From Chrysemys picta bellii (lineage: Eukaryota): a DNA stretch of 64,000 nt. The position numbers and the translations under genes are program-made. A model generated the notes under the pieces. That model made no database searches and was not told where the DNA came from. It worked only from the letters and a program-made list of their open reading frames with translations. Below, piece after piece: positions 38,433 through 46,441 of this stretch (its first letter is position 1; each line of letters begins with the position of its first letter). The DNA lies in assembly GCF_011386835.1 (NCBI RefSeq), contig NC_088802.1, forward strand, positions 2,108,001-2,172,000, in the 5' to 3' direction.

Positions 38433-41400
38433 ATGGAGCAGCTGCCAGCCCTGAGCCCCATCCTCTGCATCCTCCTCATCCCCACCTGGGGAGCAGGTAT
38501 GTCGGCAAATCCTGGCTAATTTAATCTGTCCACCTGCCCCATGCCTAGATCCATCTCTGTCTGTCCGTCTGTCCATCTTCCCCATGCATAGATCCATCTC
38601 TGTCTGTCCTTCTGTCCATCTGCTCCATCCCTAGATCCATCTCTGTCTGTCCGTCTGTCCATCTGCCCCATGCATAGATCCATCTCTGTCTGTCCTTCTG
38701 TCCATCTGCCCCACCCCTAGATCCATCTCTGTCTGTCCGTCTGTCCATATGCCCCATGCATAGATCCATCTCTGTCTGTCCTTCTGTCCATCTACCCCAC
38801 CCCTAGATCCATCTTTGTCTGTCCTTCTGTCCATCTGCCCCATGCATAGATCCATCTCTGTCTGTCCTTCTGTCCATCTGTCCTACCTCTTGATCCATCT
38901 CTGTCTGTCCGTCTGTCCATCTGCCCCATGCATAGATCCATCTCTGTCTGTCCTTCTGTCCATCTGCTCCATCCCTAGATCCATCTCTGTCTGTCCTTCT
39001 GTCCATCTGCCCCACCCCTAGATCCATCTCTGTCTGTCCTTCTGTCCATCTTCCCCAGGCATAGATCCATCTCTGTCTGTCCTTCCGTCCATCTGCCCCA
39101 GCTCTTGATCCATCTCTGTCTGTCCTTCTGTCCATCTTCCCCATGCATAGATACATCTCTGTCTGTCCATATGTCCTTCTACTCCACTCCACTATATTCA
39201 GCCCTATCTGTCCATATACCCTATCCCTAGCTCTATCTCTGTCTACCCACTCATCGCTTCCCCTACATCCATGTCTTCTATCTTTTTATCTATGTATTTA
39301 TGCATCCCACCCCCAAAATAATATCCATCTATCCATCCATCCATCCATCCATATAGATCTAGGGGTGGAGGATGCGTGCATGAATGCATAGATAGATGTG
39401 GATGTGTCATATCAGGTCAGTGAAAAGTATTCTGTTTCCATAAAACAAATATTTCATTCCAATATTGACTCCTCTTAATAATATCAAATCAAATAAGTCT
39501 GGAAATGCAAAATCAAATCATTCCCTTTTGACCCTATCAAAACGCTTTCTCTCCCCAACTTTTAAACCAATTGTCATCCTTTCTATGAGACGGCTTTTCC
39601 CAAGAGAAAAACATTCTGTCAAGAAAAATTGTGACCCCCTCTAGTTTGAAGCACAAATTGTATAAAGTGGAGGCATGTGTTTGTGGTGTATTTAAAACGG
39701 TTAAAATGACAAGCTGCCACTTTAATTTGTAAGGCGGTTTCCTGGTCCCTGTAAGGGGGAAGCCGTTTCATACCCCTAATGGTATTTGTTGCCCTTCTCT
39801 GTAACTTTTGGAAATCTAATGAATCCTTTTTTGATTTGAGGCGACCAAAACTGCACGCAGTATTCAAGGTGTGGCTGTACCCTGGATTTATATAGAGGTA
39901 ATAGGATATTTTCTGTCTTACTATCTTTCCCTTTCCTAATGGATGCTAACAGTCTGGTGACTTTTTTCACTGCCGCTGCACATTGAGTGGATGTTTGCAG
40001 AGAACTATCCACAACAACTCCAAGGTCTCTCTTGAGTGGTAGCAGCTAATTTAGACCCCACCATTTTGTGTGTCTAGTTGGGATTCTGTTTTCCAATGTT
40101 CATGACTTTGCATTTACCACCAGTGAGTTTCATCAGCCATTTTGTTGCCCAGTCACCCAGGTTAGTGAGATCGCTTTGTAATTCCTCGCAGTCTGCTTTG
40201 GACGTAACTGTCCTGAGTGATTTTACCTCTAACGTCTCTGTGAGCATCTGCCGTGCACATAGCAGTGCTGATGTGGGGTATCTGTTGGAAGGGGAAGTGA
40301 AAGTCCTGTGCAGTGTGTTATCGACAGTGTTGTGAGCAATAGCAAGGTGGACAGGAACACACAATTCTTTCCCCTTAGCTTCTTATCTCCGTGCTGCTAA
40401 GGTTTCGGGCGGCTGCGGCGTGTCTCGATACCACTCGTCGTAGTTTTCCTTTGCTGTTATAATGTTTATTGCCCTGGTTCACGAAGGTCTCACAGTCCTC
40501 CAGAGCCCCGCTGTCCTCCGAGCGTCCCCCGGCGAGACCATGACACTCAACTGCTCCTTCGAGAACAGACAGGGCAGCAGGGTCAAAGCGACCTGGACAA
40601 GAGCGCCTGGAGTCGTGCTGGATTCTGCCCATCCCTTCTATAGTGGACGACTCAATGTGTCCCACCTGGATCTGCTCCAGAAAGGGGAGGCCACGCTGAC
40701 CCTGTCGGAGCTGGAGCAGCGGGACTCTGGTCTCTATCAGTGTCAGATCGAGTTCTACCAGGGAGAGAGCGGGACGGGAGCAGGCACCGAGCTGCAGGTG
40801 ACGGGGAGAAACCAGAGTGACACAGGTGAGGTGGGGAATGGGGACACGGGATCTTCCCCCTCTCTGGCCCCAGGGCAGGGGACTGGCTGGCTCAGGAGGT
40901 GGGAATGGGTCACGGAGCCTGTCCCCTCTATGGGGTGTTGGTCCAGGAATCGCCTAACCCCTCATTTCTATTGTCTAGGAGCTCCAGGGGGGCGTGAGCT
41001 CTGTCGGGACTCGGGGCCCCTCTTTTACCGAGCCGTCATCTCCCTGTCGCTCGTCGTTCTCTTCTCCCTGGGAATCATCCTCAGCCTGCGGCCTTGGAAC
41101 GGTACCGGGTCCGCGCGGGTTCCACCTTCACTTCCTGTCCCAAACGGTTACATGGCATCGCTGTGTGGGCTGGTAACCAGCCACTGCCCTATCCCAGAGC
41201 CAGCTGCATCTCAGCACCGTGTGAGGGATCCCCATGTAACCAGCCCCTGCCCCACCCCAGAGCCAGCTGCATCTCAGCACCAGGCAAGGGGTCCCTGTAT
41301 AAACAGCCCCTCCATCCCACCCCACAGGGGCCATGTCTGAGCACTGGGTGAGGAGTCCCTGTATAAACAGCCCCTGTGCCCCACCCCAGAGGGGCCGTGT

Positions 41401-41632
41401 CTCAGCGCTGGGTGAGGGGACCCTGTATAAGCAGCCCCCACGTTCTATCCCAGAGGTGGCTGCATTTCATCCCTGGTGGAATCAGTCTCTCGCTGGTATT
41501 TGTAGGGCTCCATCCCCGTAGCATTTCCCCCCAGTTTGTTCAGTGACGCTCTCGTTCTGTTTCCCAGGCGTCCCCGTGGTGGGTGCTGGCTCCAAGCCAC
41601 CCCCAGCACCAGGGCAGGTGACGCTGATTTAG
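38433..41632 (+). CDS. NCR3-like: NKp30/NCR3-like V-type Ig receptor, activating form (TM arginine), gene 3, 196 aa
   Basis: join(38433..38496,40487..40825,40979..41101,41568..41632). Leader [22 protein letters not shown] domain. Stalk/TM GAPGGRELCRDSGPLFYRAVISLSLVVLFSLGIILSLRPWN. Short tail GVPVVGAGSKPPPAPGQVTLI* with no tyrosine. AATAAA at about 42002. Confidence 0.85.
38520..39180. repeat. 43-bp VNTR in intron 1 of gene 3
   Basis: About 15 copies of CTAGATCCATCTCTGTCTGTCCTTCTGTCCATCTGCCCCA(CCC/TGC). Confidence 0.9.
39745..40205 (-). mobile_element. CR1 LINE fragment in intron 1 of gene 3
   Basis: Minus [29 protein letters not shown] (39776..40012). Confidence 0.85.
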
Positions 41633-45600: not shown

Positions 45601-46441
45601 CATCGCCCAGATAAAGTATCAGCCCTCGCGGGGTGCTGTGCCTGGGAGCTCCTGTACCAGGTTGCCATCGCCCTGGGGCTCCTTCTCATCATTGGCCTGG
45701 CGGCCACCCTCCTCCTGAAGAGACGCCAAGGTACCGAACCGGAGCCTTCCCCCCGCTGACCTCCTGGGACCCATGGGCCAGGGCCTCTGTTACTGAACAC
45801 ACCCGAGTGGCCGTCTGTCCGCTGTGGTCCATGCTGGGCTGTCTGTCCATATATCTATCCCCCCCATCCTTCCTTCTCCCTCCTTCTTCCCCCATCCCTA
45901 AATCTCTGCAGCTTCCCTCTTCACCCCAGACTCTCTCTCACACTCCTCTGTTTTAACGTTCCTTTCTTCTCCCTTCTTCCGCAGCGCCGCCCCACTCGCA
46001 GCCCCGCCGACGGCAGCCGAAGGTGAGACAATGCAGGCTGGGCTCGGTTCCAGCCAGTACTTGGGTCTGGTCTCCAGATGCCAATAAGGACTGGTACAAT
46101 ACAGTGAGGGGAGAGAACCCAGGAGTCCTGGCTTCCAGCCCCCCTGCTCTAATCCACCAGCCCCCGCTCCCGTCCCAGAGCTGGGATAGAACCCAGGAGT
46201 CCTGGCTCCCAACCCCTCCAATCTGGGGTAACACTGTGGGATTTGCTCCCTGGGAGCTGCCTAAAATGGCCAGAATTAAGAGACCGGATCTGGGGTGACG
46301 GCGTCCTCACTATGTGTCTGTCCAACACAGGGCCAGGGCAGCCGGGAGGCCGTGGAGAGCGAGAGCCTGCACTACGCAGAGATTAAAACCCAGACCCCAG
46401 GACGCAGGGAACACACGTCCAACCACGCCCAGCGACGCTGA
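42664..46441 (+). CDS. NCR3-like: NKp30/NCR3-like V-type Ig receptor, inhibitory form (ITIM), gene 4, 224 aa
   Basis: join(42664..42730,45163..45501,45611..45730,45985..46022,46331..46441). Leader [50 protein letters not shown]. Tail ending [32 protein letters not shown] introns, no stops. Confidence 0.85.
42760..43830. repeat. 43-bp VNTR in intron 1 of gene 4
   Basis: About 25 copies of the same unit. Confidence 0.9.
44420..44880 (-). mobile_element. CR1 LINE fragment in intron 1 of gene 4
   Basis: Minus [28 protein letters not shown] (44453..44689). Paralog of 39745-40205. Confidence 0.85.

Follow-up and report, generated by a model that had tools for sequence, protein, structure and literature searches.

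A putative activating/inhibitory gene pair with matched V domains in an NKp30-like cluster of the turtle Chrysemys picta bellii

Results

Two adjacent genes share a V domain and differ behind it

We analysed a stretch of 64,000 nt from Chrysemys picta bellii (RefSeq assembly GCF_011386835.1, contig NC_088802.1, here C12; hereafter the window), which starts at C12 2,108,001 and contains no N. It holds two neighbouring genes, called genes 3 and 4, which are candidate members of the NCR3/NKp30 receptor family and combine nearly the same immunoglobulin V (IgV) domain with different transmembrane (TM) and cytoplasmic parts. The interval 38433-46441 runs exactly from the gene 3 ATG to the gene 4 stop, and the two genes lie 4.2 kb apart. 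When both were rebuilt from the raw sequence, all introns were GT..AG, the phases fitted and the open reading frames (ORFs) were intact, giving proteins of 196 aa for gene 3 and 224 aa for gene 4 (Table 1).

The initial annotation had claimed that the V exons differ at just two residues near the G strand, and the rebuilt exons bear this out. Each V exon comprises 113 codons, split codons counted, and the pair differs at 7 nt, of which 5 are synonymous and 2 non-synonymous (97.9% nucleotide identity; 110/112 aa; ratio of non-synonymous to synonymous rates, dN/dS, 0.13). The two residue changes, E/K and Q/R, distinguish TELQV in gene 3 from TKLRV in gene 4. They fall on variable positions of the G strand, which spans 100-104 in the structural model, and are flanked by the family-invariant T100, L102 and V104; their side chains would face outward, and both changes raise the positive charge of gene 4.

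Behind the V exon, the TM region of gene 3 reads LFY-R-AVISLSLVVLFSLGIILSL-RPWNG (also read ...LFYRAVISLSLVVLFSLGIILSL-RPWNG...), with no Tyr downstream of the TM segment. The TM Arg and the Tyr-free tail were thus present as first annotated, but the 21 aa then given for the tail correspond to the share of the last exon, since the Tyr-free cytoplasmic part is ~25 aa long and ~21 aa of these come from that exon. The stalk/TM exon is identical in the NCBI protein P0006 and nearly so in activating-type proteins of Macrochelys and Mauremys. Gene 4 has a TM segment without charge and a three-exon tail with a single immunoreceptor tyrosine-based inhibitory motif (ITIM), L-H-Y-A-E-I, which fits the consensus S/I/V/L-x-Y-x-x-I/V/L; both features, proposed earlier, were found in the intact ORF. 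A further statement, that the ectodomains are almost identical, applies to the V domain but not to the signal peptides and stalks. The signal peptides differ by a 3-nt indel and substitutions, and the membrane-proximal stalks of ~16 aa are unrelated (GAPGGRELCRDSGP in gene 3, another sequence in gene 4), so that near-identity is limited to the V domain and does not extend to the whole ectodomain.

Existing protein models agree with these structures. P0006 (C. picta, 'NCR3-like') is the same as gene 3 over the V exon and onward to the stop, with identical V-TM-tail joins, and no contigs encoding it were on record in the search. P0004 (Malaclemys, 224 aa) is the orthologue of gene 4, with TKLRV and the same stalk, TM segment, ITIM and exon joins. 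Derived letters private to gene 4 lie in its ITIM exon and 3' untranslated region (UTR), at 46389, 46464, 46466 and 46561-46582, and are usable as gene-specific markers; they include a Thr (EIKTQ) where genes 6, 1 and 0 and the Malaclemys orthologue have Ile (EIKIQ). In Chelonia and Gopherus, the isoforms P0005, P0008, P0014 and P0024 lack the 120-nt TM exon, skipped in frame, and run straight from the V exon into the cytoplasmic exons, which would yield a TM-less, possibly secreted V domain with an ITIM peptide.

Table 1. Features of genes 3 and 4 and of the surrounding cluster (window coordinates unless a contig or locus is named)
Feature	Position	Strand	Evidence or remark
Gene 3 exon 1, signal peptide, phase-1 donor	38433-38496	+	ATG, GT donor, ORF model closes
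Gene 3 V exon, VJ-type IgV, 339 nt	40487-40825	+	Pfam V-set E 2e-12; AlphaFold2 (AF2) predicted local distance difference test (pLDDT) 91; NKp30 top in Foldseek
Gene 3 stalk and TM exon, Arg at outer TM boundary (LFYRAVI)	40979-41101	+	AG/GT sites
Gene 3 last exon, Tyr-free tail and stop	41568-41632	+	P0006 has the same end
Gene 4 exon 1, signal peptide	42664-42730	+	Exon model
Gene 4 V exon, 339 nt	45163-45501	+	7 nt / 2 aa away from gene 3
Gene 4 stalk and uncharged TM exon (LLYQVAIAL)	45611-45730	+	Exon model; subfamily-2 TM BLASTP match; joint 45730/45985 in RNA contigs
Gene 4 small cytoplasmic exon	45985-46022	+	Both joints as GT..AG skips in RNA contigs
Gene 4 ITIM exon (S-L-H-Y-A-E-I) and stop	46331-46441	+	Motif kept across turtles including Pelodiscus
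Gene 3 5' module: upstream region, leader, intron 1, V exon, ~68 nt	37418-40894	+	blastn, MAFFT
Gene 4 5' module, homologue of 37418-40894	41640-45570	+	blastn, MAFFT
43-nt tandem array, gene 3 intron 1, 15 copies	38525-39180	+	Tandem Repeats Finder (TRF)
43-nt tandem array, gene 4 intron 1, 25 copies	42759-43829	+	TRF
Gene 0, inhibitory type	Upstream of window	-
Gene 1, inhibitory-type paralogue = P0003 (224 aa)	7669-12454	-	tblastn
Gene 1 exons: V; TM; ITIM	9013-8675; about 8566-8444; 7782-7672	-	tblastn
Gene 2, activating-type pseudogene	35714-37418	+	Homology begins 35714, leader missing
Gene 5, activating type = P0042; leader 56996, V exon from 63912	56996-64000	+	Runs off window; TM and tail exons in L002
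Gene 6, inhibitory type	V exon C12 2,175,903 (L002:4401-4739)	+
Turtle subfamily 2, NKp30-like	C12 2,185,674-2,233,849		V 47-58% identity; P0070, P0076, P0106

The genes belong to an NKp30-like cluster near TNF

The V domain is of VJ type and contains the J-like motif G-x-G-T-x-L-x-V; Pfam recognised it as a generic V-set domain only. With a profile built from turtle sequences alone, human NKp30 (6yjp, 3noi, 3pv6, 9fww) was the best natural single-V receptor. Relatives were then sought among 1.84 billion cluster representatives, and names were retrieved for 10 single-V matches; those from outside the turtles were shark 'NCR3-like' proteins (Heterodontus, Chiloscyllium), a newt 'NCR3-like' protein (Lissotriton), a gecko protein and one unnamed record. 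After the profile had been extended with these relatives, NKp30 scored 67 bits, the best of all single-V chains, and the next V-domain chains (T-cell receptor (TCR), light chain, JAML) followed about 9-10 bits below.

The structural comparison pointed the same way. A first AF2 model on a shallow turtle-only alignment was unusable (pLDDT 52) and was replaced by a model of the V domain on the extended alignment (pLDDT 91). In a Foldseek search of the PDB, the top four matches of this model were NKp30 chains (3pv6_B, 3noi_A/B, 6yjp_A; TM-score 0.78-0.81, 30-31% identity). In Swiss-Prot, the top five were NCR3 from rat, two macaques, human and chimpanzee (TM-score 0.82-0.85), with CD79b, PD-1 and Ig kappa ranking below. 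Both the Foldseek places and the profile score group the V domain with NCR3/NKp30 and not with another family, which had been named as a point to check. Many turtle homologues are also auto-annotated 'natural cytotoxicity triggering receptor 3-like'.

The locus fits this grouping. A genome-wide six-frame search with the gene 3 V domain as query gave 21 matches, 17 of them within ~140 kb of C12 (2.092-2.234 Mb): seven close copies (87-100% identity) and about ten divergent ones (47-62%), one of which is a fragment. The four matches on other contigs were weak (31-38%, E 1e-7 to 1e-6). The cluster on C12 thus holds at least 16 V exons and departs from the single-copy state of mammals. At C12 2,046,442 lies a TNF orthologue, which matches TNF chains at E 8e-39, and another exon of the TNF family follows at C12 2,055,772, so that the cluster is roughly 50-60 kb from TNF, and its position matches the major histocompatibility complex (MHC) class III neighbourhood of mammalian NCR3. 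On the profile and Foldseek matches, the synteny and the gene 3 TM Arg taken together, we accept the turtle genes as predicted members of the NCR3/NKp30 family; gene 4 is a member by its V domain and locus, not by its signalling design.

Within the cluster, the distance from an activating-type tail exon to the next leader is ~1.03 kb in three of three cases (genes 2 to 3, 3 to 4 and 5 to 6). Genes 5 and 6 form a second pair in the order activating then inhibitory, with the same spacing as genes 3 and 4.

The V module has been exchanged between two backbones

The 5' modules of genes 3 and 4 form a mosaic of 86-100% identity overall, and their homology ends ~68 nt past the V donor, in intron 2. 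Identity reaches 96-100% over 37610-37908 and over 38009-38408, with 88% between them and 200 nt of promoter/5'UTR at 100%. It is 93% in the leader, 69-96% in distal intron 1, and 96-99% over 39924-40823, which covers the intron beside the V exon and the V exon. The V exon is no better kept than its flanking intron: the homogenisation acts on the DNA and is not convergent selection on the protein. The copy number of the 43-nt repeat explains most of the length difference between the two genes. Read in frame, the junction behind the shared module has GWL continued by RRWEW in activating types and by KGLRIP in inhibitory types. Because the same junction is present in genes 1 and 2, the boundary between the activating and inhibitory forms is old and fixed.

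The two halves of gene 3 have different closest relatives. Its V exon is 98.6% and 98.0% identical to those of the inhibitory-type genes 6 and 4, and 93.6% and 90.7% identical to those of the activating-type genes 5 and 2, whereas its 3' module is closest to activating-type gene 5 (96.0%). The maximum-likelihood tree of the V module mixes activating with inhibitory labels. A forced activating clade on the Chrysemys V modules cost 32.7 log-likelihood units and was rejected by the approximately unbiased (AU) test (p = 2.6e-5), as was a forced grouping of genes 3 and 5 (p = 0.008). The near-identity of the V domains is thus the product of recent DNA exchange, by gene conversion or unequal crossing-over, and not of old conservation.

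A tree of 36 V domains across turtles, with types set beforehand from TM and tail motifs, extended this pattern. Its 8 activating-type rows need 8 label changes, and an activating clade was again rejected (p = 2e-5). In Macrochelys (98/95), Caretta (twice) and Chrysemys, activating rows have inhibitory rows of their own species as neighbours. Outside Chrysemys, some of the rows are automatic gene models taken from different assemblies, and these could share a V exon; the Chrysemys exchange is read straight from the DNA, and the Macrochelys pair is divergent enough for two genes. From emydids to Macrochelys and sea turtles, both the activating TM core (YRAVISLSLVVL.SLGIILSLRPWNG) and the ITIM LHYAEI have been retained, and Pelodiscus has the ITIM as well. 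This conservation of the signalling modules across distant turtles indicates that the backbones are old and that the V modules were repeatedly exchanged between them, and the tree suggests that the exchange recurs in other turtle lineages.

Between genes 3 and 6, the V exons differ at 5 nt, all non-synonymous and none synonymous. These counts hint at diversifying change after a very recent conversion but are too few for a test, and a claim of positive selection, based on 5 vs 0 changes, was dropped for that reason.

Inhibitory-type transcripts are spliced as modelled

Four runs were taken as RNA, and their contigs were aligned to 44050-47100, the gene 4 region. Contigs of three runs from two studies showed GT..AG skips exactly at 45730/45985 and 46022/46331, and one contig of 387 nt runs from the TM exon through exon 4 into the ITIM exon. 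In another, the V exon is preceded by 57 nt that lie off the stretch, consistent with a leader; the V-to-TM joint is absent from the listed joints of the contigs on this region. The splice models proposed initially were thereby supported for the inhibitory type from the TM exon onward, but the letters of the contigs fit paralogues and not gene 4. Transcripts of the inhibitory-type architecture thus exist and are spliced as modelled, in paralogues to judge by their letters, and the use of the contigs as evidence for gene 4 was dropped because of these variant letters. One contig matches gene 4 exon 4 and intron exactly over 115 nt.

Genes 3 and 4 as a probable paired receptor

With the gene structures, the family, the synteny, the module exchange and the presence of adaptor genes established, we consider it likely that genes 3 and 4, as intact adjacent members of the NCR3/NKp30 cluster in the MHC class III neighbourhood, form a paired activating and inhibitory receptor. 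The gene models, family assignment and locus support, at sequence level, the earlier proposal of a paired-receptor system on an NKp30 scaffold. Both genes would display nearly the same VJ-type ligand-binding domain on opposite signalling backbones. From its place at the outer TM edge, the Arg of gene 3 would dock on the TM Asp of CD3zeta or FcRgamma dimers and elicit an activating signal through their immunoreceptor tyrosine-based activation motifs, as in NKp30, and the phosphorylated ITIM of gene 4 would recruit SHP-1/2 and make it an inhibitory receptor. The 5' module, from the promoter to ~68 nt past the V exon, has been swapped between these backbones. Adaptor coupling, SHP recruitment, a shared ligand and the cell type are what we infer here. 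The genome contains TM exons of the CD3zeta-like and FcRgamma-like kinds that keep the conserved Asp (DPRLCYILDGILF... and EPELCYVLDAVLF...). A complex prediction of the gene 3 stalk/TM with two CD3zeta TM segments scored 0.09, which carries no weight either way.

Several observations weigh against this interpretation. The gene 3 Arg is not mid-membrane but at the membrane boundary, on the edge of a hydrophobic stretch of 19 residues. In the more divergent subfamily 2 of the same cluster, a gene at L008:306-3660 joins an outer-TM Arg (...IYRATIAL...) with an ITIM, LQYVEI, and an immunoreceptor tyrosine-based switch motif (ITSM), TEYASV, and the same combination occurs in Chelonoidis-type and Pelodiscus proteins (P0076, P0106); the Arg alone is therefore no proof of an activating role. 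BLASTP found no similarity of the activating-type TM exon to turtle inhibitory-type and subfamily-2 TM exons, nor of the activating-type TM/tail to the newt NCR3-like TM/tail. Because the stalks differ, ligand binding and oligomerisation may differ as well, despite the near-identical V domains. Where the RNA contigs have well-supported variant letters in the ITIM exon and 3'UTR, 8/8 of these agree with genes 6, 1 and 0 but not with gene 4. Finally, the turtle-only profile placed NKp30 just about 1 bit over Ig kappa V domains.

The first of these points feed the alternative that survives best, which we nevertheless regard as unlikely: gene 3 would not be activating, its Arg would be an inherited juxtamembrane stop-transfer residue, and the protein would act as a tail-less decoy or as a non-signalling or differently signalling competitor of gene 4 for ligand. 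The position of the Arg at the very edge of the hydrophobic stretch fits this idea, as does its recurrence at the same place together with ITIM and ITSM in subfamily 2 and with Tyr-motif tails in a shark NCR3-like protein. Human NKp30, however, pairs with CD3zeta through its TM charge (PMC12272517, PMC6514059). The TM segment of the gene 4 type has Gln in place of the Arg, suggesting that the charge matters, and the activating-type TM segment is near-invariant across distant turtles, as expected of a helix that packs on a partner.

Comparison of the exons gives some indication of how the two types arose. The gene 4 TM exon aligns with that of subfamily 2 by BLASTP (12/25 identical, E 5e-5) with Gln opposite Arg, so that the inhibitory partner seems to have lost the charge. 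The alignment of the two tails is ambiguous (E 0.029, ITIM against ITSM). A view of the activating and inhibitory TM exons as homologues with an R/Q swap was withdrawn, as BLASTP gives no alignment between them. In the shark NCR3-like protein, Tyr motifs accompany a TM Arg, and the alignment of its TM segment and tail with the turtle inhibitory tail is weak (28% over 60 aa, E 0.005). This alignment, together with the ITIM-bearing genes reported from Xenopus, suggests that tails of the ITIM type probably go back to the family's ancestor rather than being an invention of turtles. At L007, sequence resembling the activating-type intron and stalk comes after a subfamily-2 V exon (about 2029-2523), and subfamily 2 may have activating partners too.

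Quite improbable, in our view, is a pair that exists in the genome without working as one, with one or both genes silent or decaying in a birth-and-death cluster. The neighbouring gene 2 is a pseudogene with three lesions: the leader is missing, the V exon (36385-36723) has TAG in place of the invariant Trp, and the TM-exon acceptor is GG and not AG. Its cytoplasmic-side Arg is altered as well (LSLWPCNG). The RNA contigs on gene 4 bear paralogue letters, and in the homologue hit list no NCBI protein equals full-length gene 4. Decay is at odds, however, with two intact ORFs, canonical splice sites throughout and V changes that are mostly synonymous (2 non-synonymous, 5 synonymous, at the dN/dS given above), as well as with the exact 115-nt contig match to gene 4 and the NCBI model P0006 for gene 3.

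Very little probability remains for membership of another VJ-type immunoglobulin superfamily (IgSF) group (CD7, CD28/PD-1, CD79b, SIRP or CD300/pIgR-like), with the NKp30 label a habit of annotation. A single-sequence PDB search was headed by pIgR and antibody light chains, with no NKp30 in the 60 matches listed; automatic annotation names some turtle homologues 'CD7-like', and an Atlas feature search with P0006 returned generic V-set clusters only (MPZL1, CD226, TIM-3, CD7), without family discrimination. The pIgR and single-chain variable fragment (scFv) scores of that PDB search are, however, sums across several V domains. NKp30 was the best single-V chain with both profiles and, as NKp30 or NCR3, filled every top Foldseek place in both libraries, the locus adjoins TNF, and shark and newt NCR3-like proteins are among the nearest named non-turtle relatives. 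The concern that genes 3 and 4 represent two haplotypes, or an assembly duplicate, wrongly set in tandem, raised with the initial annotation and favoured by 5' modules alike to 100% over 200 nt, is hardly credible given 3' halves that are unalignable and have different exon sets, 43-nt arrays of 15 vs 25 copies in a gap-free window, a repeat of the order and ~1.03 kb spacing in genes 5 and 6, and both types in many other turtle assemblies and across turtle families.

Comparison with known receptor systems

Human NCR3 lies in MHC class III, and NKp30 couples to CD3zeta/FcRgamma via its TM Arg; mammals have one NCR3 gene, activating only, and vary its tail by alternative splicing of exon 4 (PMC6514059, PMC12272517). 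The turtle genes share with mammalian NKp30 the single VJ-type IgV and the place by TNF in MHC class III, and gene 3 in particular shares the order of leader, V, stalk-TM and tail exons, the TM Arg and a short motif-free tail. They differ by a V-exon count of at least 16, by the division into activating genes and inhibitory genes, by an ITIM tail and by exchange of the V module. The Arg of human NKp30 lies at the stalk/TM interface. The turtle Arg is likewise at the outer TM edge, the zeta/gamma type of charge, and not a mid-membrane Lys of the DAP12 type.

NKp30 is usually presented as the one natural killer (NK) receptor conserved from sharks to humans. Xenopus has a multigene NKp30 family and sharks a diverse NCR3 family, linked to the MHC or to its paralogue. 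Ohta in 2006 reportedly described V-type IgSF genes in Xenopus class III (XMIV), some with ITIMs, and Flajnik in 2012 and Kinlein in 2021 are said to have reported multicopy NKp30-family genes in Xenopus and shark, some with ITIM-type tails. As far as these reports go, the turtle cluster resembles XMIV and shark NCR3 in being multicopy, linked to the MHC or its paralogue and partly equipped with ITIM-type tails. A full-text search of the searchable literature found nothing on reptile NKp30 or on activating/inhibitory NKp30 pairs with matched V domains.

The arrangement is otherwise that of paired-receptor families such as KIR, LILR/PIR, SIRP alpha/beta, PILR, CD300, chicken CHIR and CEACAM1/3: linked genes with near-identical ectodomains (in the turtle, the V domain only) that carry either an ITIM or a charged TM segment and short tail. 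Homogenisation of ectodomains by gene conversion and birth-and-death evolution with pseudogenes are also common to both. The scaffolds of those families, in contrast, are of C2/I-set or other V types, with the leukocyte receptor complex (LRC) or NK complex (NKC) as their home, whereas the turtle genes have one VJ-type V and sit in MHC class III. Subfamily 2 shares with genes 3 and 4 the cluster, the VJ-type V domain and a TM exon homologous to the gene 4 type, but holds Arg and ITIM+ITSM in one protein where the gene 3/gene 4 subfamily splits them over two genes. The paired-receptor design is already known, and its realisation on the NKp30 scaffold is a new example; the direct evidence of module exchange is the most useful new element.

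The turtle locus presents the NKp30 scaffold as a multigene, paired activating/inhibitory set within the MHC, in which a ligand-binding module repeatedly swapped between two signalling backbones is visible in the DNA. It bears on the origin of paired receptors, by subfunctionalisation of an ancestor with Arg and ITIM or by exon capture; the probable ancestry of the ITIM-type tail opens the former scenario. It also bears on co-evolution of NKp30 and B7-H6 gene number in reptiles and on NK-type recognition in a lineage without well-described KIR or Ly49 systems. Possible, though doubtful, is a wider reading in which the cluster serves turtles as their main NK/T-cell receptor system that is MHC-linked and evolves fast, a functional analogue of KIR or Ly49, derived by the split of a bifunctional Arg+ITIM/ITSM ancestor, of a form that subfamily 2 and a shark NCR3-like protein would still show, and with V domains matched by conversion and co-evolving with MHC-linked ligands. 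Candidate ligands would then be B7-H6-like genes or the interspersed CD1/MHC-I-like genes.

Other features of the window

CD1/MHC class I-like exons at 17000-20300 (-) and 28088-28444 (+) encode an MHC_I_3 domain and a C1-set alpha-3-like domain, and the C1-set exon has an inverted near-duplicate about 10 kb off. These exons lie between the NKp30-like genes, so that genes of the MHC-I-like kind and candidate NK receptor genes are intermixed. A lone C1-set exon at 4742-5086 (-), like the beta-2 domain of MHC class II (Pfam C1-set E 3e-14), appears to be a class II beta relic.

Intron 1 of gene 5 contains an ORF of 926 aa (60331-63111, -) with SCAN-like gag, zinc-knuckle and integrase zinc-binding domains. 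It is the remnant of a gypsy-type retroelement and has stretched the intron to about 6.8 kb. A tandem array at 48607-49906 consists of 17 copies of a 75-nt unit (93% matches) that resembles a short interspersed element; the same sequence recurs at 46108-46220, and the element draws very deep, unrelated contig coverage in the RNA runs.

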